Below, one piece after another: positions 19,488 through 36,534 of a DNA stretch of 64,000 bases; within the stretch, counting starts at the first letter, position 1; each line of letters begins with the position of its first letter. The DNA is from Blastocladiella emersonii ATCC 22665. Taxonomy: Eukaryota; Fungi; Blastocladiomycota. A program made the translations under genes and the position numbers. The notes below the pieces were generated by a model. That model did not search any database. It was not told where the DNA came from and saw only the letters and a list, made by a program, of their open reading frames with translations. The stretch spans positions 1,426,001-1,490,000 of the forward strand of contig JANHCV010000002.1 in assembly GCA_025594325.1 (NCBI GenBank). Direction: 5' to 3'.

Positions 19488-21169
19488 ATGGAGGGCAAGG
19501 GCACCGTGTGCATGTATGCCGCGTCCAAGGCGCTGGACCTGCTGGACCTCGGTACGGCCGCGTCGTCGATCGACTGCCGACTTCGAGCCCGCGGAGCCTG
19601 ACTGCCGGCGTCTTCAGGGACGGTGTACGAGGAGACCAACGTCCTCAACCGGTTCAAGTCGCCGACCGAGATCGTCGACTACAGCTCGCCCGCGGCCGAC
19701 GGCGGCGCGGGACCCGTCCACCTCGTCCTGCTCGGCGTGTGCGACCCGTCGACCGTCATTAAGACGATTTCGCGGGCTCGCCGGCATGGTAACCGACCGC
19801 TCCACGTACGCTCCTTGTCCCGGACCGACCGCGCGTCCGTTTCTCACGACGCACCCGCCGCTAGATCACGATCAGCGAGCCGCAGGCGACGCTGCTCGCG
19901 CGGCACATGCTGCTGCTGTACATTGCGCTGGACCCGTCGCTCGACGAGCTCAGCTACACGGAGCGCACCGAGCTGTTCCTCGAGTTCTACGGCTCGCTGT
20001 ACATTCGCGAACGCTCGCAGCAGTGGCTCGTCGGCGCCACGGACCATCTCATTCGGTACCACATCACCTTCCTCACCCTCGCTTGCGCACCTCATCGCTC
20101 ACACCGTCCCCCGAAATAGCGCCGTGACGGATGGCAAGGGCCTGCTCGGCAACCTCATCGACTTTGACAAGCTGCGGTACCGCGAGCGCGACGACCTCGA
20201 GTTCGTCTTCAAGTTCTGGCGCGGCGCCAAGCCCATGCCGCTCGACCAGATGTGGGACTTCCGCCTCAAGCGCTTCTACGGCGCGCGCTACGACTCGCGG
20301 GAGAACGCCGTTGACTGGGACTACCACATGCGCCTCAAGAACAACGTGCGTCGCGGAGCCTTGCTGCTCCTTCACCTCCCCTTCTCACTCGTCTCCCGGT
20401 GTAGACCAAGTACATCACAAAACACGAGTTCCTCGAGTGGCGGCAGACGGGCCACGCCTTCACCGTGCGCGACTCCGCCCGCGTGCAGCCGAACCGCACC
20501 CTCGCCGCCGTCGACGCGCTGTTCGACCCCGCCGAGGGCGTCAAGGCCGCGAAATGGGGCTACTTCGGTGACGTCTCCACCGGCCCGTGGCCCGCGTGGT
20601 GCACCGACACCGAGTTCAAGGACCCGCTCCTCAAGACCGCCAACGACCTGCCGACGCACGCCGGGTCCGACATCGCGCTGCACAACGTGGTCGCCGCGAT
20701 CCGCGAGTGGCACACGGGCCGGCCCGACGACGGGCCCGTCGTCGGCGCTGAGACGCCGAGGGTCAAGATTACGTTCCTCTCGTGCGAGCCGGCGCGCGCG
20801 ATGGGGAAGATCGCGCCGGGGAGCGTCGATGTCGCGGTCTTCGGGTCCGCCCTCGCGCACCGCGCGGCCGACCTCGTCCCGCGCATGCGTGACGCGAAGG
20901 AGGCGGCGATCTGCGTCGAGACGGCCAGATGGCACCTCGACCTCTCGCCCGCGCAGCGCGGCGCGTACTGCGAGAAGGTCGTCGAGATGGTGACGGGCAA
21001 GGGGACGGCGGGCGCGATGGCCCTGTCGCGTCGCCAGGCGCGCAAGCTGTGGGAGGCCAGCGGCAAGTGGGAGGCCGTCGGCGGCGCGTGGGACTACCTC
21101 GTGTTCTCGCCGCGGCGGGCCGAGGGCGAGGAGAGCGACGGCGACAAGGTCGCTGAGGCGGCATCGTGA
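19488..21169 (+). CDS. DNAAF3: Dynein axonemal assembly factor 3 (PF22), multi-exon
   Basis: Spliced segments MEGKGTVCMYAASKALDLL, VHLVLLGVCDPSTVIKT, LARHMLLLYIALD...ERTELFLEFYGSLYIRE, WDFRLKRFYGARYDSRENAVDWDYHMRL, PNRTLA and GYFGDVSTGPW match the DNAAF3 layout. Confidence 0.88.
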
Positions 21170-21188: not shown

Positions 21189-22943
21189 TTATTGGCACAG
21201 CTGGTACATGGCGACCGCGAGCTCGCGCGTGATCCGGTGCAGCGAGTACGGCGGGATCGACGCGTCGAGCGCCGCGAGGAGATGCAGGTCGCCGAGGTCT
21301 GGGAACCGGCGCCACACGACGTTAGCGATGTCGGGTGTCACGCCTTGGCGCTTGTTCTACGATTCACCGGTGAGCTCAGGAACACCGACGAGAACTGAGC
21401 GACGTACCAGCGTGAGAATGACCTGGTCGCACTCGGGACCCGCACGCTCGCGGTGTGTCTCGACGGCACCGAGCCACGCGAATAGGCGCGAGCGGAGATC
21501 GGTCCGTGCGTACCACGTCCATGCGCGCTGCTGGGTGAAGTGGTAAAGGACACTATGGGAAGCGATCGGTAAGCGAGGGACGAGAGTCGCGACAGCTGGG
21601 CGTACCCGTGCAGGAACGGGTGCTGCAGGATCGGCTCGTCGAGGAAGGCCATGGGCGGCGTGACCTCGAAAAAGAGCGGGATGACCTGGTCGTGGCGAGA
21701 GTCAGCGTGGTCCGCGCAAGGACGGCGCGGGAGCGAACGTGCCGATTCCGTGAGCTCGTCGACGTTGAGCCGGGACGACTGGCTGGTCAGGCACAGGACC
21801 GAGAGGCCGTCGCGCAGTTTGAAGCCCAGGAGCTGGTGCACCGTCTACGTATCGAAAACGCAGGGTTAGTTCAGGTCATACGCGTGAAGTCTGATTGCGC
21901 GCGCACCATGGGCGACGAGTCGTGGAGACAAACGTTCTGCTTGAAGCTCCGCGCGCGCGGGAGGTAGCGCGACGCGACGGTGACAAAGATCTCGCGCTCG
22001 AGGTCGGACAGAGAGAGCCTACTCGCTGCGGTTAGTCGAGTTGACGTATTCTTCAGTAGCGAAGACGTACCAGTCCTGGGTGAAGCTGGTGACTTGGCCG
22101 TGGTACAAGAGGACCGTGATGGGGCACCCGATCCGGGCGGCGAACGACGAGACAAGTTTCTGGTACGCGGCCCCTGCCTTGGGCGCCATGGGGAAGAACG
22201 GGTAAGAGTTGGCGATGAGCGGCAGGAGGAACAGGTTGTGCGCGTCGATGAGCTTGGTCAGGACCTACACGGGCGCCAAGTCAGAAATGCGGATAGCGGG
22301 ACACTGCATGAAGTTGTACCCGTTGAGACACTTGGTCGGTCGGGGATGCGAGATGGACGAGGGAAAAGAGCAGCCGTGCCATGGAATCGACGCACGCTCG
22401 TCCAACCGACCTGTCCGTTTCGAGCACAATCACGAGGCTACAGAGGGACGGGATATGAGCCGCCATATCACATCGAAATTTGCGAGGACCTCACGTTCGA
22501 ACTCGTCGCACGTGCACCCGCCACTTGCCGTGGAGATGCACGCAGTCCGGCGCATCCTCGCTCGATGCCAAGGCGTTGGCCAGCTCCAGGAATCGGGTAC
22601 AAGAAAGCGGCCCACCGGGCATTCTTGACTCAGAAGCGGGCGCTGAAGCACTCTTTGAGCCGTCGAGCGTGGTGAGCAGGCTCCGGAGCGACGGGAACGG
22701 GCCGGGCGGCGGCGCGACGACGGGCAGCGCCCCCGCGCTCTGCATCCGGTGTAGCGTGCTCTGGGCCGCATAAGCCCCGGTCACCGAAGCCGACAGCGGT
22801 CCACCGCGGCACACGGCGATCCGTTTCTCGGTCTGCAGATCATAAATGACAAGGTGGCGGAACCACGCGGACGGCGGGCCCGGCTCGCCTGGCCCGTGAA
22901 CCGGACATGCCGTTGCAGGTGGTTGCGTGGTCGGAGCTAACAT
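21189..22943 (-). CDS. FUZ: Fuzzy-like (CPLANE) tri-longin protein, ~7 exons; not visible in the ORF track as one ORF
   Basis: Manual splicing gives ...KWRVHVRRVRTLVIVLETD...MARLLFSLVHL...AYQKLVSSFAARIGCPITVLLYHGQVTSFTQDWLSLSDLEREIFVTVASRYLP...VCLHDSSPMTVHQLLGFKLRDGLSVLCLTS... This aligns by eye with FUZ (LQEALSGFAEAAGTTFVSLVVSGRVVAATEGWWRL...VYLPHGSPTVPHRLLTLTLLPSLELCLLCG). Confidence 0.72.
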
Positions 22944-23203
22944 GGTGGGCTGGGATTCCGGATTCGTAGCTTGGATCGGCGGCGAACCGAAAACGCGTCG
23001 CGCGACGCGTCGCAGCGCACGTGAGCGGTGCACGTGTGCGATCGCAGCGCCTCCGCGCCGCCGCCGTTCCCGCCGGCCGTGTGGCGGCGCGCCAACTCCT
23101 CTCCTCCCTCCTCGCAAGGAAACGGCAACGTCGCACTCCCTGCAACGCAACTAGCGCAACGCATCGAGCGGGAAACCACCCACCTCCGCAAGAAAAAACC
23201 ATC

Positions 23204-25227: not shown

Positions 25228-27293
25228 ATGTCTGACGACAACCATACCATCATCTGCGTGTGCGGCGAGAACGGTACGTTCGCATGCTCTCTGCTTCTGC
25301 CTCTCCTCCGTCTCCAAGGCCCGAGCGCGTCTGGCTCTGCTGTTCGTGGTCTGCTCGCTCGTCCCAACTGCCCGCATCGGACTCCAGAGCGCCCTCGCGG
25401 CGGTTCCTGAGTGGATGCAGAAGCGCTCGGTGGCGAGATCTCGGGCCCGAGCAAGCGAGCGAGCGCTTGTTCTGTGTGTGAGTGTGGCCTGGCTGCCGCA
25501 CCAGCCCTGCTCCCGTCTTTCCCTCACTCGGCGCACTCGGCTGCCGACCTTCTGCTCGCCGTCCCTGTGTTGTGGGATGGGCAGGCGGGCTCGAACCGGG
25601 TGCGACGCGTGGGCGACGACGCGTGGCACCGCCGCCGCCGCCGCCGCCGCGATTACTCACTGCGCGTAATCCTCCTCGCGGCGCGCGGTGGGCCGCGAGC
25701 GAGTCAGGGGGCGCCGCGCCGCTCGGCCTGCTCGTTCGCTGCGTCATTTTCACTCCTCCACCTCCGACATCAACTCGAACTGCACTCACCTCCCCCGCCC
25801 CCGCCCTACTGAACAGTCGACCTCGGCTCGCCCATGGTGCAGTGCGAAATGTGCGGGTGCTGGCAGCACGTCGCCTGCACCGCGTACACGATGCGGCAGA
25901 TCGAGGCCATGGACATCTACCTGTGCGACCGGTGCGACCAGCTCAGCCTGCCGTCGCCCACCGCCTCGGTCGCGTCCACGGCCGCGAGCGTGCCCACGGG
26001 CATCGCCATCCCGGGCTCGCTGCCCGGCGCCCACCACCCGCAACCGCTCGCCGCTTCTTCGGGTACCGGCGCGGGCACCCCGACGCGCGGCAACGGCACC
26101 GCCACGCCGCTGCGCGGAGTGCCTGCTGCCATGGCGGCGGCCGCGGCGGCTGCGGCATCGCCGTCCCCGTCGCCCTCGGCCGCCTCGTCCAACGGGTCGC
26201 TGCTCGCCCCGACCTCCGACGCGCTCGCCGCCGCGGCTACCTCGTCGCCCGCGTCCTCGATGAACGGTACGCGATAATCTCGCGCGATCGCCTCTCACGT
26301 GCCCGACGCGCGCCGGCTGTCTCGCGGCGCCTGTCTCGCGTCGGTCACGTGGGCGGCGGCCGCGCCACGCCACGCCACACGTGGGCGGGTGTCGCAAGCA
26401 GGCCCGGGTGTCTCACGCGCTGCGCCACCCCCTCCCTTGCCCGCTCGCCTAATTTAGGGATCCGCGGGTCGTCGGCCCAGAACCACCCGGCCCTCCGCGG
26501 CATCGTGCTCAAGCTGCGCAAGGCGTCGCCGTCCGGCACGGCCAACGGAGGCGCTACCTCGCCCCCATTGCCCGAGCTCCCGCTGCCGACTGCCACCGCC
26601 GACGCCTCGCGCAAGGAGACTTCCGCGGCGCCAACACGGACCACGACGGGTCGCAAGGACAGCGCGCGGTCCCGCGCCGCGGCGCGCCGGTCCACGTCGC
26701 CGCCCGTGTCGTCGAACGGCGGCGCGCTCTCGCCCATCCTCGACATTGTCGGCGACTCGTCCGCCCCACCAACACCCACGGCGCCGAGCGCACCCTCTGC
26801 CGTGAAATCGGTTTCCTCGTCGACGGCGGCTACGCGCGGCCAGTCGCCCGTCCCGGAGCCCACGACGGCACGCACGCGGCCCACGCGGCGCGCAACGACC
26901 ACCACTACCACCACGACGACTTCGGGCCGCGGCGGCCGCGGATCCGCCGCCGCGATGCGCCGCGTGTCGTCGGCCTCGACCTCGTCGTCGGGCTCGAGCC
27001 ACGACGAGGACGGGTTCGCGGGCCAGTCGATCAAGTCGATCCGCAAGCGGATCCGAAAACTCAAGCGCGTCGCGCGCCACGAGTTCAAGCACATGCAGCG
27101 GTTCCAGGCGTGCCAGCGGCAGATCCTCGACCGGTTTGGCGGCGGCGACAGCCAAGACGAGGCCATGATGGACGTGGACGACGCGTCGCGCGAGGCCGTC
27201 GACGCGGCGCGCAGTATCGCGGCCGACCTCAAGTCGTTCCTCGCGGTCGCGGGACAGTTCGAGGAGCGGTACCGCACGCTGCTGCGGCCATGA
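25228..27293 (+). CDS. PHD-finger chromatin protein, 3 exons
   Basis: IICVCG in exon 1 joins MVQCEMCGCWQHVAC...YLCDRC across intron 25274-25816, giving a C4-H-C3 PHD. A second intron starts at ~26268. The tail is long, disordered and S/T/P-rich, ending in a helical segment. Confidence 0.8.
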
Positions 27294-27530: not shown

Positions 27531-30500
27531 TCACAAGTACAGCGACCCGCAGAACACGATATCGCGCTTGATCGCGGCCGCCGCCGCGTCCATCTTGACG
27601 TACAGGGCACCATCCCCGACCAGCCGCGCCGCGTCCTTGATCTCGCGGCACGTCTCCTCGAGCCGCACGATGCACCGCACGATGCTGCCCTCGGCCACGC
27701 TCGTGAGCCCCATGATCTGCTTGAACGGCAGCCCGCGCGCCCACTCGTACACCACCTCGACCAGGCCGTACTTGAGCGAGTCGCGCAGGTACCCTTCCAC
27801 GGTGACGGGCACGCCCAGGGCCTCCTGCACCGCGACCACGCGGCGAGCCGTCTCGCGCACCGTGCGCAGCGCGTCGAGCATGCGCGCGGGCCAGCGGGAG
27901 ACGGTCAAGGGGGCCGTCGGCGCGGGAGCGTCCAGCGTGTCGTCGGCCGCGTCCGCGGTGGCCTCGGCCGCGGAACTGGTGGCGGCGCGGGACTCGGCGG
28001 CCGTCAGCGCCTTGACGAGCTCGGCGTCCATGTCCGTCTTCTCCTGGAACAGGAACACCGACAGCACCGCGACGACTTCCGCCAAATCAAGGTCGGCGAA
28101 GAAGTTGTTGAGGATGAGCTCGGTGAGCAGGAGCTCGTCGCAGTTGTTGATCTCGCACGCGACGCGGCCCTTGAGCTGGACCGTCTTGGACCGCGGGTCG
28201 ACGTACCCGAGCTGCATCAGCACGTCCATGCGCGTGTGGTACTCGGGGAGCAGCTCGAGGTTGAGCGACGACAGGGTCAGCGTCAGGGACTGCATGCGGT
28301 CCGCGAGCGTGCGCTCGGCGTGCACCGCCGCGTAGTGCGCGACCAGGTCGGGGCAGTGCGCGCACTGGTACTTGGCGAGCGACCGCATCAGGTCCACGCG
28401 CCGCGCGTACTTTTCCTGGAAGTCCAGGTCGCGCAGCTTCGACCAGCTGAACTCGCGCAGCGACCCGTCGTGCGCCGCCGCGTACTTGCGCATCACCTGC
28501 ACCGCGACCGCCGTGTCGTGCTTGGCGTGCCGCGCGACCGCGTCGAGCGAGATCCCGAGCCCCGCCGTCGACCCGACCGCGTCGCCGAGCTCGGCCGCCG
28601 ACGCCAGCGAGTGCGCGAGCACCAGCGCGATCTCGCCCGGCTGCACTACCACGACGCGCCCGTCCGCCACGTCCGCCGCGGGCACCTGCAGCCGCGTCAC
28701 GGGCAGCGGCACGTCGTTGAGCGCCGCGGCCACGGCCTCGTCCGAGTCGGAGGTCGATGCGTCCGACGACGCGTGCTTGGCGGCGCCGCGCTCAACGAGG
28801 ACCAGTACCGTGAGACTCGCCTTGGCGTTCTGCGCGGCGGACCGCTGCTTGGACAGGACGACGGCGAGGTGGTTGCGGTACCGCGGCGTGTTGATGACGA
28901 CGAGGCGGCCGGCGGCGAGCGCCTTGGCGCCAACGGCGCTGCCCATGATGGCGTCGGCAGTCGCGCGCTGCAGGGTGACGATCTCGGCGCACGTCGAGTA
29001 GAAGTCGGCGAGGTCGCGCGAGCACAGTAGGCACGCGAGCGCGGGCAGCTCGCGCAGCGCCGACTGCAGCTTGTTGAACTCCTTTTCGACGTCGGGGAGC
29101 ATGCGCTGCGACGAGTTCTCGGAAAACGACCGCTTCATCATGTCCTCGACCTGCAGCGTCTCGACGCGCAGCAGGTTCAGGATCATGTTGTAGGTGAGGC
29201 GGAACTGCGACTGCAGCTTGGTCGGCGGGCCGAGCGTCATGTGCTGCAGGGCGAGCAGGTCGGGCGAGTCGAGGCACATCTGGATCACGGTGCCCGTCTC
29301 GTCGAGCCCGCGGCGGCCCGCGCGGCCCGACATCTGCGTGTACTCGCCGGGCAGCAGGTTGCGGAACGACGTCCCGTCGTGCTTGCGCGTGCTCGCAAAC
29401 ACGACGCACCGCGTCGGCATGTTGACGCCCATGGCAAACGTCTCGGTCGCGAACAGCACCTTGACCAGGGTCCGCGCGAACAGCATCTCGATCACCTCCT
29501 TGACGAGCGGCAGCAGGCCGCCGTGGTGCACGGCGATCCCGCGACGCAGCATCTCGCGCATCCGCACCAGCTGCGGCAGCTCGCGGTCCTCGGGCCGAAG
29601 GCGGCACAGGCTGCGCTCCAGGAACACGTGCACCTCCGACTTCTCGGACGCGGTCAGCAGGTCGAGCGAGTTGAGGCAGTCGGCGTACTCGTCGCACTTC
29701 TTCTTGGAAAAGACGAAGGTCGTGACGGGCAGCAGGTCCTTTTTCTGCAGCACGCCGATCAGCTGCGACCACGTCGTGCGGTCGAGCCTCTGCTGCGTGA
29801 TGGTCTTGGTCGGCGGCTGCTTGCCTGGGCGCCCGTTCGCGCCGCCGCCGCGGCCGCCGCGCGATGACGTGACGAGCGCGGGCCGTTTCTCGCCCTGCTT
29901 CACGGGCGGCTGGTTGGCGATGCCCAGGATGTGGTCGTTGGCGTCCTTGATGCCCTTGCCCAGCAGGTTCTTCTTGGCGTCCACGAACTTGAAGTACTGC
30001 TTGGCCGACGGCACGTACAGGTGGTGCTCGAGCGGCACCGGACGGTACTGCGTCGAGATCACGTAGATGTCCTTTTTCTTGGTGCGGCTACACGGTTGGA
30101 TGGGCGGTGGGTCGGTTGGTCGGACGGTCGGTCGGTTAGCGCGCGTGTCGAGCGACGTGCAAACCTCGGGAAGACGCGTACCCAACCCAATCGGCAAACT
30201 CGCGCGTGTTAGGAACCGTAGCCGAGAGCAGGATGATCTGGATGTGAGCAGGGAGCATGATGATGACCTCCTCCCAGACGACGCCGCGCTCCGAGTCATT
30301 CTACACGGGCAGCGTCAGTAACTGGCGCGACAACGGACCCACGAGCTGCGAGATACTTTCGATGTAATGAATTTCGTCAAACACGACGTATTCAACGTCG
30401 CGGATGAGGTCGGCGCCGCGGTACAGCATCGAGCGCAGGATCTCGGTGGTCATGATGAGGCAGCTGGCCTCGGGGTTGATCTGCACGTCGCCCGTGAGAA

Positions 30501-31897
30501 TGCCCACGTCGTCGAACGTCTTGGAGAAGTCGCGGAACTTCTGGTTGCTGAGCGCCTTGATCGGCGACGTGTAGATGACGCGCGTCATGTGCTTCTTCGC
30601 CAGCGCGATCGCGTACTCGGCCACGACCGTCTTTCCCGCGGACGTGTGCGCCGCCACGAACACCGAGTCACCCCGCTCGAGGCGGTACACGGCCTGCTTC
30701 TGGAACAGGTCGAGCTCGAACGGGTAGTCGTGCGCGAGCCGCGGGACCGACGTCGCGAAGTGGTCCATCGGGTCCGTCATCACGTGCGCCCACTCGGTCT
30801 TGCGGCTCGCGGCGGCGGCAGCAGCGGCCGACTTGGTCGTCGAGGTGGCGGTCGGGTCGCCCGAGGCCACGTCCACGTCGAGGGCTTCCTCGAGCGACGA
30901 CGCGTCGCCGTCCGCGTCGGCGGCAGCGGCGGGCGCCTCGGTCTCGGCGGCAGGAGCGGGCTCCGGCACCGGCTCGGGCTCGGGCTCGGGCTCGGCCTCG
31001 GCCTCCATGAGGTGGTCGAGGATCGCCTGCTCCTTTTCGTGCGATGAGGTGATGACGTCGACGAGATCGACCATGGTCTGCAGCCCGCCGTCGCCCTCGC
31101 CATCATCGCCGGCGACCGCGACGAGCCCGCGTTCGAACCCGGGCGGGACCGAGAACAGCTTGCCGCCGTTATCGAGCAGCGTGGCGGGGTCGAGCACGCG
31201 CTGGTTCGCCTCCGTGGTGCCGTCGAGGTCGAGCCCGCCGGGCATGAACGGCACGTTGCCCGACTTGCCGCGCACGAAGGCGCTGGCCTTGTCGACGCAC
31301 CGCTTCATGGACATACTGTTGCTCGTGTTGAGGCCCGCGGCGGCCGACTCGACCTCGGCGAACCCGGTCACGGCGCCCGTCAGCACGTCGCGCTGCAGCA
31401 GCACGGCGAGCGGCGACGGCACGGGCTCGAGCTCGCGGTACGACGAGAGCGGCGGGAGGAAGGACTCGGCGGGCGGAAAGTACTGCGCGTCGTCGAGCAG
31501 CGCGGCCGGGAAGGACGCCGGCGGCGTCAGGAACTCGGACTCGAGCTCGGACCGGATGTCGTGCGCGAACACATAGTCCTCGCCGAGGCCCAGCGGGAGC
31601 TATACATGTGGTGTCCAGAGGGTCAGCGAGCGAGGGTGGCGGAGCAAGTGGCAGGCCGTACGTTGGTGGCGGGGACGACGGGCCGCTCAGCCGAGGTCGG
31701 CACGAGGCGGAACTCGCCGGCGAGGCCGATTTGCTGGACGGCAAAGCCCGAGTCCTGGACTAGAGTGGGCGGCGGCGTAGACGGTGGGACGGGTGAGCTG
31801 CTAAGGTCGGCCGTGTCCACAAGTTGTCGCCACAGGGCTACCCACCGGCATCGTCGGTCGTGCCCTCGAGGGCGACCACCTTTTCAGGGACTGTCAT
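27531..31897 (-). CDS. SKI2: Ski2 DExH RNA helicase (SKI complex)
   Basis: [80 protein letters not shown] and C-terminal [11 protein letters not shown]. Two short 5' exons are inferred (start ATG 31897; [17 protein letters not shown] resembles the SKIV2L N-terminus). Confidence 0.93.
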
Positions 31898-32059
31898 CAG
31901 TTTTCGTGTGCGACGGCGTCGTCGGGTCGGCGGTGCGGTTGGGGAGGATCGCTCTCGAGTGTTGGTCGGCGCGACGTTCACCTCGCCGCTTCCTCTCTCC
32001 CGCAACCCGCAACCGGTCTCTCTCTTTGCAACGGATCAACCGCATACGCCGCCGCCGCC
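31898..32059. promoter_or_regulatory. Putative bidirectional promoter between SKI2 and SKI3
   Basis: 162 nt separate the divergent start codons, with a pyrimidine-rich tract on the SKI3 side. The SKI2 start is inferred from splicing. Confidence 0.6.
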
Positions 32060-35000
32060 ATGTTCGCTGCGCGCGTCAAGTCGCAGCTCAAGAAGGCGCG
32101 CGAGGAGCTCGGGGCCAAGCGGTACGAGGCCGCGCTCGAGGCGCTCGACGACGTGCTGTACTACGAGCCCGACAACGTCAACGGGCTCATGTTCAAGGCC
32201 GCCGCGACGCAGAACCTCGACCGCTTCGCCGAGTCGCGCGCCGCGCTCGAGCGCGTCCTCGAGCTCAACCCGGCGCTCGCCGCGGCGTGGCAGGGCCTCG
32301 AGAAGCTGTTCGAGAAGACGGGCGACACGGACCGCCTCGTCCCCGTCGTTGAGAAGCTGCGCGACCTGCACATTGCCTCGGGCGACGGCAAGCGCCTCGC
32401 CGACGCCCTCGAGCGTCTCGTGGACCTGCACTCCAAGGCGGGCGACTGGCCCGCCGCCGAGGCCGCCCTGCGCATGTACCTCCCCGGATCCCCGGCCCGC
32501 GCCGTGCTCGAGTCCCCGCCCGAACCCGCCGCCGTCCTCATGCGCATCGCCGACATGCACGAGGCCCAGGAGGCCAAGGCCATCGCCGACGACGTCAAGC
32601 GCCAGCGTGCCCTGCTCGGCGCACCGCCGCTCGCCGTCGTCCAGGCCCGCGTCGAGCGCGACGTCGCTCTCAAGTCGCAGCTCCTCGACGTCTACGAGCA
32701 GCTGTTCGCCGCGGGCCCCGCCACCGCCGAGCTGCTCGCCAAGTACATTGCCTGTCTGCGCAAACGCATCGCCGTCACTGACGACGCCACGCGCCGCGCC
32801 GCGCTCGCCGCCACGCTGCGTGCCCGCATCGACGAGGTCGTCAAGGCGCGCCAGCCGATCGCAATCGCGCTCCAGTTCTTCCTCGACCTGCACGACGCCG
32901 CCGAGCCCGCCGAGTACCCGCGCGACGTGCTCGAGTTCTACGTCGCCAGCCTCGCCGATGCCGCGCCCGCGAAAGAAGGCGACGAGGACGAGTACCTGCT
33001 CGTCGCCAAGTGGATCCTCGACGGCAACGAGCCCGCCGACCTCGTCGACCCGCAGTCCATGTTCGGCGCCACCGTCACCACCATGCTCTCCTCGGTCGAC
33101 GACCTCGTCCTTTCCGCTGGCAAGCGCGCCCTCGCCCTCGCCGCCGACCTCGAAGCGAGCATGGGCGCGTCGTTCGCCAAGGCCAAACCGACCATTCGCC
33201 TCCGCCGCGCCCAGGCCCTCGTCCTCGAGAAGCTCGCCCACGAGGCCATTGCCGAGCTCAACGCGCCCGGCGTCGACCCCACCGCTGACCCCGTCCTTCT
33301 CGCCCGCGGCGACGCCCTCGCGCTGCTCGGCGAGCACTACGAGGCTCGCAAGTGCTTCGCCAGCGTGCGCGCCGACTCGGCGTGGGCGCAGTCGTCGATC
33401 GCATGGCTTGATTTCGTGATTGGCGACTCGGACGCCGACACGGGCGCGATCGCCGCGACGCTCGCCGCCATCGACGCAAGCTCTCTGACCGGAACCCCCG
33501 CCGCCGTGCACCATTTCCGCGTCGGCCGCGTCGCGTGGGCCGCGGGGCTCCACGCCCCCGCCTACACGCACCTGCTGCAGGCCGCACAGCTCGCTCCGCA
33601 GGAGTGCTCGTCGGCGTTCACGTACCTCGGCCTTGTCTTTGCCGCGCGCGGCGACCCCGAGCGCGCCGCCAAGTGCTGGTCCAAGGCCGTCGCTCTCGAC
33701 AAGGCCGACCACGAGGCTGCGGACCACCTCTCGGCCTACTACGTCGGGCACCAGCAGTGGGACCGCGCGATCGCGGTCCTCGAGGCGTCGACGGCCGCGA
33801 GTCCCCGCGTCGCGCTCGGGTGGAAGCGCCTCGGCATGATCCTCGCCCGCACCCACAAGTGCGAGGAGGCCGCGGCTGCGCTCCAGACGGCGAACCGCGT
33901 CGATGGAGATGATCATGTCGCGTGGCAGTCGCTTGGCGAGGTGTACCTCGCGCTCGGCAAGTTCTCGGCCGCGCTTAAGGGTACGGATATTCCGCCCTTG
34001 CTCAGCTTTCAAGGCAACAACTAACGCACTCTCGTACAGTCCTGCTCCGCAGCCAGGATCTCGTCGCCAACGATACCGTGACCAACTACCTCCTCGCCGA
34101 CGCGTACTGCAAGCTCGGCCAGTACACCGAGGCGACGGCGCTGCTTGACCCCAGCTTCCCGCCGAGCGTGCTCCTCGCCGGCGAAGTGTACAGCATGCAC
34201 GCGCGCGAGGTGTTCAACCACGGCCGGTTCCCCGAGGTCGCGCGCCTGCTGACCGAGGGCATCGCGATCCTCGAGGCCAACCCGCTGCCCAACACCAAGC
34301 TGTACGCGAAACGTCTCGCCGACCTGCGCGTCCAGTGGTCGCTCGTCCCGCACCACTGCCCCGACTACGCGCACGAACTTGCGGCCGCCGCCGACCTGTA
34401 CTCGTCGGTCGAGCTGTGGACCGAGGCCGGGATCGCCCGGTACCACGCGTTCGAGCACGCGGGCGACGCCTCGTTCCTGACGGCCGCGGAGGCCGACCTG
34501 CGCGTCGCCCTCGGCCAGTCGGCGACCGCCGGGACTAGCCCCGCGTGGACCGCCGTCGGGTGCGTGTACGCGGCGCAGGGCCGCGTCGCCCTCGCGCAGC
34601 ACGCGTGGATCGTTGCCGCGCAGCTCAACTCGTCCGCGGCCGCACCGTGGCTCAACCTCGGGTTCCTGTACCTCGACCAGGGCGACCGCGAGCTCGCCGC
34701 CCAGGCGTTCCAGCACGCCACGCTCCTGCTCGACCTCGACGAGCCCGCCGCGTGGATCGGCCAGGCCATGGCAGCCGACGCCGCGAGCGAGCGCGGCGCC
34801 GAGATCCTGCACCACGCGTGGCGTACCGGCGCCTGGCATACGCCCGCGCTCGCGCGCGTGTACCTCGCCAACGCCGCGCTGCGGCAGACCAACGCCGTCG
34901 AGGCCGAGGTCGCCGCGCACCGGTGGACCGAATACGCGCCGTCCGACGCGGCGGCGTGGATCGCGCTCGGGTGCGCGCAGGAGCGCACGGGCAACGCGCG

Positions 35001-36534
35001 CGGCGCCGTGGCGGCGCTCAAGACGGCGCTTAAGCTCGACCGGTCCAACGCTGCCGTCATCGGCAACCTCGCGCGGTGCCTCGCCGCGTCCGACCCGAAG
35101 CGCGCCATCGACCTGCTCCGCCGCGTCCCCGCCGCGCAGCGCGACGCATGGGGCTGGTCGGCCGCGTGGACGCTCGCGCTCGCCGAGCACCACAGCGCCG
35201 GGCACGCGTCGCCCGAGTCCCTCGCCGCGTGCCTCGCGTACCCCGCCGATACGGTCCCGCCGGCCGCGCGCGTCGTCCTCGCGCAGCTCCTGTACCGCGC
35301 GGGCGAGACGGCCGCGATCCCGTCGCTCGTCGCCGATACCGCGCCCGCGGCGCTGTGCGCGCTCGGCATGGTCACGGGCGACGAGACGCACATCGCGGCG
35401 GCGTTCGCGGCCGCGTCGCCCACCGAGACCCAGTACCTCACGTCCATCTACCAGGTGCTCCAGGGCGACCTCGTGGCCGCGCAGCGCGCGCTCGAGCGCG
35501 CCGTCCACATGTTCCCTGGCGACCCCAACGCCGTCGCGCGCCTCGCCCGGTTCCTCGTCCGGTACTCGGGCGCCCGCGCCCAGGTCCCGCTCGCCCTCGC
35601 CGTCGCGGCCCACGAGCGCGGCGCCGGTGAAGCCAAGACCGACGCCGGCGGCGAGCTCCAGGGCCTCGCCCTCGCCACATCCGGCCTACTCGCCGCCGGC
35701 CACACGGCCAAGGCGTGCCGCATGGCCCAGCGCCACGCGTTCATGCGGCCGAGCTCCGCGCGCGCGTGGCGCGGCGTCGTGCACACGGCGCTCGCGTGGA
35801 ACGCCGAGTCGCCCGCGGCCGTCGCCGACGAGACCCTCGCGCGGATTGTTCTCGCGGACCCGTCCCCGTGCGCGCCGCCCGACTCGCCCAACGCGTTTGC
35901 ACACCTCCTCACGTCCGCGGTCGTCCTCGCGCTCGGCGACCCCGCCGTCGCCATGCAGCACGCCGAGGCGGCCGTCGCGGCCGCGGGCGTCGACGTCGCC
36001 GCGCTCCCCGCCGTCTACCTGCGCCAGCTCGCGCGCGTCCTCGCGACGCACGGCGAGGCCGACGCCGCCCTCGCCATGCTCAAGCGCGCCATCGACGACG
36101 CACCAGCCGCGGCCGACCCTGTCGCCGGCGCGACCCGTGCTGCGGCGTGGCTCGAGCTCGCGGACCTGTACCGCCGCGTCGGCTGGGTCCCTGCCGCCGC
36201 AGCCGCGCTCGACGACGCCGCAGACCATCTCGTGGACCTTCCGGCCTCCGCGCGCGCGGTGATTGCCGCCGCGGCGAGTGTTGCCCAGGGACTCTCGGTG
36301 CCGACGGCGCAGCACGCGCTCGCGGCCGCCCGCAGCGGCGAGGCCGGCGAGATCGAGCGGTCCGGACCGCTCACGGTGCTCGAGGAACAGGCCCGCGGGC
36401 TCGTCGCCGTCGCGTGTGCTCGAGCTGGGTTCGCGGCGCGCGCGACTAAGATGATGGCGGGCGTCGCGCGCGCGGACCTCGTTGACGCGTTCCTCACGAG
36501 CGGTGGCGCGATGGCGGTCGACGCGAGCGCGTGA
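32060..36534 (+). CDS. SKI3: Ski3/TTC37 TPR scaffold (SKI complex)
   Basis: N-terminus VKSQLKKAREELGAKRYEAAL...VLYYEPDN...NPALAAAWQGL resembles yeast Ski3. TPR repeats run throughout. Intron 33981-34039 joins the two ORFs in frame. Confidence 0.85.

Follow-up and report, generated by a model that had tools for sequence, protein, structure and literature searches.

The SKI complex is a cytoplasmic assembly that feeds RNA to the exosome; SKI2 provides its helicase activity, and SKI3 is a scaffold built of TPR repeats. The genes encoding these two subunits are unlinked both in yeast, where they lie on chromosomes XII and XVI, and in human, where they map to 6p21 and 5q15, whereas in the blastoclad fungus Blastocladiella emersonii ATCC 22665 they are divergent neighbours, with 162 nucleotides (nt) between their start codons. 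The pair lies in a stretch of 64,000 nt, referred to here as the window, which covers positions 1,426,001-1,490,000 of contig JANHCV010000002.1 (C11) in a 32.65-Mb assembly of 21 contigs (GCA_025594325.1). The published B. emersonii assembly consists of 21 PacBio HiFi contigs with 10,031 genes (PMC9730499). We propose that the SKI2-SKI3 pair is probably a derived, lineage-specific and most likely neutral juxtaposition, brought about by the shuffling of gene order, and not a conserved RNA-surveillance cluster.

The proteins are the same as those of the yeast and human SKI complex (SKI2/SKIV2L, SKI3/TTC37 and SKI8/WDR61), with a helicase that carries an arch and a DSHCT domain and a TPR scaffold of about 1470 amino acids (aa). 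Characteristically, SKI3 binds the N-terminus of Ski2 and two copies of Ski8 in that complex. With regard to the arrangement of the genes, the human SKI2 orthologue SKIV2L, located in the major histocompatibility complex (PMC6769589), offers a close parallel. According to the account of this locus given in PMC6769589, which cites Lee & Song 2000, NELF-E and SKIV2L share a 176-bp bidirectional promoter that experimentally drives both genes. As in B. emersonii, a SKI2 orthologue is transcribed there from a minimal divergent spacer of ~170 bp, but the partner is a transcription-elongation factor and not a SKI subunit. Moreover, the NELF-E/SKIV2L pair is kept from sharks to humans, whereas the SKI2-SKI3 pair was seen in one species only. 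The divergent histone pairs H2A-H2B and H3-H4 resemble SKI2-SKI3 in that 1:1 partners are transcribed outwards from a short spacer; the histone pairs, however, are conserved across eukaryotes and have known co-regulatory elements, while the SKI2-SKI3 pair shows no conservation and has no known shared element. A conserved divergent pair of same-complex genes is marked by a spacer well below 1 kb and by retention across relatives; the spacer is indeed well below 1 kb in B. emersonii, and the pair is not retained. A tendency of genes of the same complex to be linked has been explained by dosage balance or co-fluctuation (PMC6762216, PMC6785257). Our literature searches found no published account of SKI2-SKI3 adjacency, which adds an instance to a known type of arrangement. 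The two genes and the spacer between them are as follows.

27531 to 31897, minus strand: SKI2, gene for a SKIV2L-type DExH RNA helicase, from start to stop codon, with its ATG at 31897.
31897-31846, 31759-31662, 31599-30343, 30300-30182 and 30087-27531, minus strand: the five exons of SKI2, in a model equal to database entry P0001.
31898 to 32059, no strand: the SKI2-SKI3 spacer, 162 nt between the start codons, read directly from the sequence.
32060 to 36534, plus strand: SKI3 (TTC37/SKIC3), coding sequence in two exons, with its ATG at 32060.
32060 to 33980, plus strand: exon 1 of SKI3, from the translation of the open reading frame, with matches to TPR families and a weak match to TPR_22.
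33981 to 34039, plus strand: the SKI3 intron, 59 nt, GT..AG, with a CTAAC branch-like site, read from the sequence, its junction agreeing with database entry P0130.
34040 to 36534, plus strand: exon 2 of SKI3, stop codon included, from the translation of the open reading frame, with matches to TPR families.

Gene models were searched exon by exon, and the database entries P0001 and P0130 served as full-length queries. The five-exon model of SKI2, with four introns that all read GT..AG and measure 86, 62, 42 and 94 nt, gives exactly the 1360-aa protein P0001, 'Antiviral helicase ski2 [B. emersonii ATCC 22665]'. It contains the Pfam domains Ski2_N (PF17911, 9e-26), DEAD, Helicase_C, the MTR4-like stalk (PF21408), the beta-barrel (PF13234) and DSHCT (PF08148, 2e-52), and in the exon translations the helicase motifs I, II (DEIH), III (SAT) and VI are intact. 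The best PDB matches are human SKIV2L (6.7e-157) and yeast Ski2 (3e-154), with Mtr4 weaker at 1e-97; for the large exon, the PDB bit scores are 527 for human SKIV2L, 518 for yeast Ski2 and ~330 for Mtr4/Dob1. SKI2 is single copy in B. emersonii, the second-best genomic match being an Mtr4-like paralogue on contig C15 with 37-46% identity. The helicase is thus the orthologue of SKI2 and not of MTR4, and an earlier note on this DNA, which had placed a Ski2 helicase on the minus strand, is supported by the Ski2_N domain and by SKIV2L and Ski2 outscoring Mtr4.

The model of SKI3 equals the 1471-aa protein P0130, 'Superkiller protein 3', a long all-TPR protein within the range of ~1400-1650 aa expected of SKI3/TTC37. 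In PDB searches, residues 479-641 of exon 1 align with residues 455-624 of human SKIC3 (3e-29), and residues 105-577 of exon 2 with residues 774-1287 (7e-19), so that human SKIC3 is the best natural PDB match and is collinear across both exons; yeast Ski3 matches exon 1 at 7e-14, also collinearly. All named word-index matches of exon 2 are TTC37/SKI3. In an exhaustive representative search, the top matches carry the NCBI name Superkiller protein 3, for example in Allomyces, Sorochytrium, Basidiobolus and Batrachochytrium, and the top library matches are named Superkiller protein 3 or TTC37 in at least 20 fungi as well as in fishes. The gene occupies one genomic locus, in single copy. Its product is hence the SKI3/TTC37 orthologue, not a generic TPR protein; the collinear SKIC3 match, the names of the homologues and the single copy agree with the Ski3-type TPR protein that had been noted on the plus strand. 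Both names are already correct in the public NCBI annotation.

The N-terminus of SKI3 (MFAARVK...) aligns from its first residues in Allomyces, Catenaria and Blastocladiella britannica, and that of SKI2 aligns from its first residues with the orthologue segments ..IPDEVLALEG / MTVIDEITALES. Because both N-termini match orthologues from the first residues, the start codons and the distance of 162 nt are firm, and the divergent arrangement described earlier, with ATGs at 31897 on the minus strand and at 32060 on the plus strand, is confirmed. No TATA-like hexamer is present in the 162-nt spacer, nor were repeats or palindromes of note found in it beyond GC-rich chance matches. On the plus strand, the half near SKI2 has 36 G and 18 C, and the half near SKI3 has 40 C and 14 G; the counts mirror each other, and either half, read on the sense strand of the adjacent gene, is rich in C. 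The composition switches near position 31978; ahead of SKI3, positions 31978-32020 form a CT-rich tract. This is how two back-to-back promoters would look.

With 162 nt available, the 5' leaders and core promoters of the two genes would have to be packed into one shared promoter region, and SKI2 and SKI3 would share a single nucleosome-free region. Some co-regulation of the two genes is likely as a physical by-product of the short spacer, and it would be incidental. The reading of the spacer as a shared bidirectional promoter, which the earlier note had advanced, is therefore retained in the sense that the promoter region appears to be necessarily common, while the selected mini-cluster attached to it is unsupported. 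Spacers of this length are not exceptional. The relatives' gene tables contain 20 head-to-head spacers, whose lengths lie between 78 and 2698 nt (median 465 nt); because three of the 20 measure 162 nt or less, short divergent spacers can be regarded as common in these genomes.

The pairing was compared with the SKI2 and/or SKI3 loci of the five other Blastocladiomycota with data, among which Catenaria was assessed from its SKI3 locus only and Paraphysoderma from its SKI2 locus only.

Allomyces javanicus: SKI2 has gene Y (described below) upstream in tandem; SKI3 lies in the middle of a different contig, of 127 kb, head-to-head with a Cu-ATPase gene.
Catenaria anguillulae: Img2 is the head-to-head neighbour of SKI3, and the 10 kb to either side contain no SKI2.
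Blastocladiella britannica: 119 nt separate SKI3 from its head-to-head partner FUZ; SKI2 is truncated by the end of its contig, with DNAAF3 after it.
Paraphysoderma: a lipase gene lies upstream of SKI2.
Sorochytrium: SKI2 (221,639-226,398) and SKI3 (314,410-320,208) lie on the same strand of the 498-kb contig JAVQLU010000018.1, 88 kb apart.

None of the five has the pair, and no locus holding both SKI2 and SKI3 was found when the eight loci from these relatives were searched by tblastn with all four exon pieces. In a further eight fungi (Terramyces, Quaeritorhiza, Powellomyces, Spizellomyces, Cokeromyces, Linnemannia, Fimicolochytrium and Polyrhizophydium), SKI2 and SKI3 are on different contigs in every case (the recorded contig sizes differ). 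The statement that these genes are usually unlinked thus holds for most of the other fungi examined. The earlier note had also proposed a mini-cluster and had named absence of the pairing from all relatives, together with uncorrelated expression, among the outcomes that would speak against it; the absence is what the synteny survey shows for all five blastoclads, though these are distant relatives. A pair of unnamed genes on the minus strand, upstream of SKI2 in Sorochytrium, was considered as a split SKI3 and rejected, as neither has TPR or a tblastn match; one of them is a subtilase.

As an observation on SKI3 itself, the gene upstream of it runs on the opposite strand in each of five blastoclads with data, B. 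emersonii included, and the head-to-head partner differs each time (FUZ, GLE1, Img2, Cu-ATPase and SKI2). The spacers concerned are L005 9882-10000, L006 9442-10000 (Sorochytrium), L007 9385-10000 and L008 8689-10000 in the relatives' locus extracts, and 31898-32059 in the window. If both orientations were equally likely and the species were independent, five of five would have a chance of ~3%; the species are, however, not independent.

The search for a larger SKI cluster gave a similar picture. Beyond SKI2 lies gene Y, which belongs to no family, and beyond SKI3 a transposon-rich stretch; none of the additional pathway genes (SKI8, SKI7/HBS1, exosome) that would make up a functional cluster of at least three genes adjoins the pair. 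SKI8 was not found near the pair, as judged from the nearest strong WD40 gene and without a SKI8-specific family model. That gene, at C11:1,417,216-1,418,337 (L014 3216-4337; 1,417,282-1,418,100 in a narrower delimitation), some 35 kb from SKI2 and ~8 kb before the start of the window, was rejected as SKI8, as it is striatin-like (Striatin-3, 4.8e-65). The WD40 gene downstream of SKI2 in Sorochytrium was likewise rejected, being a G-beta. With no third SKI gene found nearby and striatin as the closest strong WD40 gene, the 'mini-cluster' for RNA surveillance is not supported on this count either.

In filamentous fungi, mesosynteny describes regions in which small inversions have changed the order and orientation of the genes but not the gene content. 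The neighbourhood of SKI2 shows a similar behaviour, in that the three neighbours listed below are also near SKI2 in Allomyces or in B. britannica, with order and orientation changed; only a handful of genes enter this comparison, and most neighbours are not shared.

25482 to 27293, plus strand: gene Y, a 603-codon open frame without a Pfam family, transcribed convergently to SKI2 and serving as a marker of synteny.
19488 to 21163, plus strand: DNAAF3-like gene (DUF4471), a second marker of synteny.
21300 to 22950, minus strand: gene X, tail-to-tail with DNAAF3, homologous to an unnamed 238-aa gene of B. britannica (L003 4195-5230).

The C-terminal 147 aa of gene Y match a gene of Allomyces javanicus (L001 8823-9233) with 32% identity (E 2e-10). 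This counterpart lies directly upstream of SKI2, in the same direction, and points to its 5' end. Because gene Y faces the 3' end of SKI2 in B. emersonii and the 5' end in Allomyces, SKI2 is flipped relative to gene Y. Gene Y can also be noted as a blastoclad-specific gene that stays beside SKI2.

The DNAAF3-like gene has collinear tblastx matches to B. britannica L003 2312-4117, the same-strand gene directly after SKI2 in that species; in B. emersonii it is 6 kb away and its orientation relative to SKI2 is reversed. DNAAF3 and gene X are kept together in both species, in B. emersonii at 19.5-22.3 kb, beyond gene Y. Gene X showed no similarity to the true FUZ of B. britannica (L005 8386-9881). 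The canonical FUZ of B. emersonii (Fuz_longin_1, 88.6 bits) is outside the window, at C16:2,173,878-2,175,262, and none of the neighbours of B. britannica FUZ were found around it on C16. A single inversion of a SKI2..DNAAF3..FUZ block from the order in B. britannica was consequently rejected, given the plus-strand orientation of DNAAF3, seen by tblastx, and the location of FUZ on C16. No single inversion fits the orders of the three species, and therefore at least two events are needed. Judged by gene order, the SKI2-SKI3 junction is itself one rearrangement breakpoint.

Taken together, these data suggest that local shuffling of gene order on the B. emersonii lineage put two intact housekeeping genes, SKI2 and SKI3, head-to-head. 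Small inversions, in a neighbourhood that borders a transposon-rich stretch, would be the probable cause. By chance, one named pair of genes has a prior of ~2e-4 of being adjacent (2 / 10,031, with the gene count of PMC9730499), and given ~10,000 same-complex pairs, by our estimate, about two adjacent ones are expected per genome. The adjacency of complex partners in a single species should hence be read with caution, since chance alone would produce about one or two such cases in a genome, and on present evidence the SKI2-SKI3 pair is what the reordering of genes in a compact genome ordinarily produces.

Several points weigh against this interpretation. The relatives are distant, with identities of 50-61% for SKI2 and 33-42% for SKI3, and the pair could have a longer history in a clade around B. 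emersonii that lies outside this sampling. The path of inversions cannot be reconstructed as one event. In addition, the proximity of 88 kb in Sorochytrium would be an event of ~0.3-0.6% if positions were random (assuming a genome of 30-60 Mb), which hints at an ancestral loose linkage, possibly favoured for co-fluctuation (PMC6762216).

The alternative that survives best is selected co-regulation, in which the bidirectional promoter synchronises SKI2 and SKI3 for dosage balance or for the co-fluctuation of 1:1 subunits. The spacer of 162 nt, its mirror-image strand composition and the lack of a TATA-like hexamer are in keeping with it, as are the reports that linkage of same-complex genes is favoured in mammals (PMC6762216). 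The 176-bp bidirectional promoter of human SKIV2L described in PMC6769589 also lends it some weight, though the partner there is NELF-E, and so does the presence of SKI2 and SKI3 within 88 kb in Sorochytrium. However, none of the other blastoclads has the pair and eight more fungi have the genes on separate contigs; SKI3 changes its head-to-head partner among relatives (FUZ, GLE1, Img2, Cu-ATPase); SKI8 was not found nearby, the nearest strong WD40 gene being striatin; and one or two such pairs are expected in any genome. We consider selected co-regulation unlikely for B. emersonii. If the pair were selected, it would represent a compact case of two RNA-surveillance subunits on one promoter, in a fungus under development as a model. 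It is quite unlikely, too, that the linkage has been under selection across the Blastocladiomycota since the ancestor of the phylum, with B. emersonii as the extreme in which one 162-nt bidirectional promoter synchronises both subunits; such a selected linkage, if true, would allow the dosage-balance and co-fluctuation theory of eukaryotic gene order to be examined on a natural example.

A third explanation supposes that SKI2 and SKI3 shared a neighbourhood in the blastoclad ancestor, as in mesosynteny, and that inversions later joined them, so that linkage and not adjacency is what was conserved. Sorochytrium, with both genes on the same strand of one contig at 88 kb, speaks for such an ancestral loose linkage, with which the short contigs of A. 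javanicus and B. britannica, ending at or inside SKI2, are compatible. It is nevertheless a single supporting species, its SKI2 and SKI3 loci share no other gene of the window, and in the eight non-blastoclad fungi the genes are on different contigs, which makes this explanation distinctly improbable. The linkage in Sorochytrium is still the loose end of most interest: it leaves a small chance of an ancestral or favoured loose linkage in the phylum, in line with the reports on same-complex linkage (PMC6762216). Finally, a mis-join of the assembly at the SKI2-SKI3 junction, a possibility raised only by the break in synteny at the same place, found no support and is very improbable, given that the assembly consists of 21 PacBio HiFi contigs (PMC9730499), that the window lies at 1.43-1.49 Mb, deep in a 2.84-Mb contig, and that the spacer is unique and non-repetitive between two complete genes.

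The comparison of the relatives also bears on the genus itself. B. britannica is no nearer to B. emersonii than Allomyces and Catenaria are, with SKI2 identities of 58% versus 61% and identities in the N-terminal half of SKI3 of 38% versus 41-42%, and micro-synteny between both 'Blastocladiella' species is almost lost. The distance of B. britannica and the lost micro-synteny fit a genus that may not be monophyletic.

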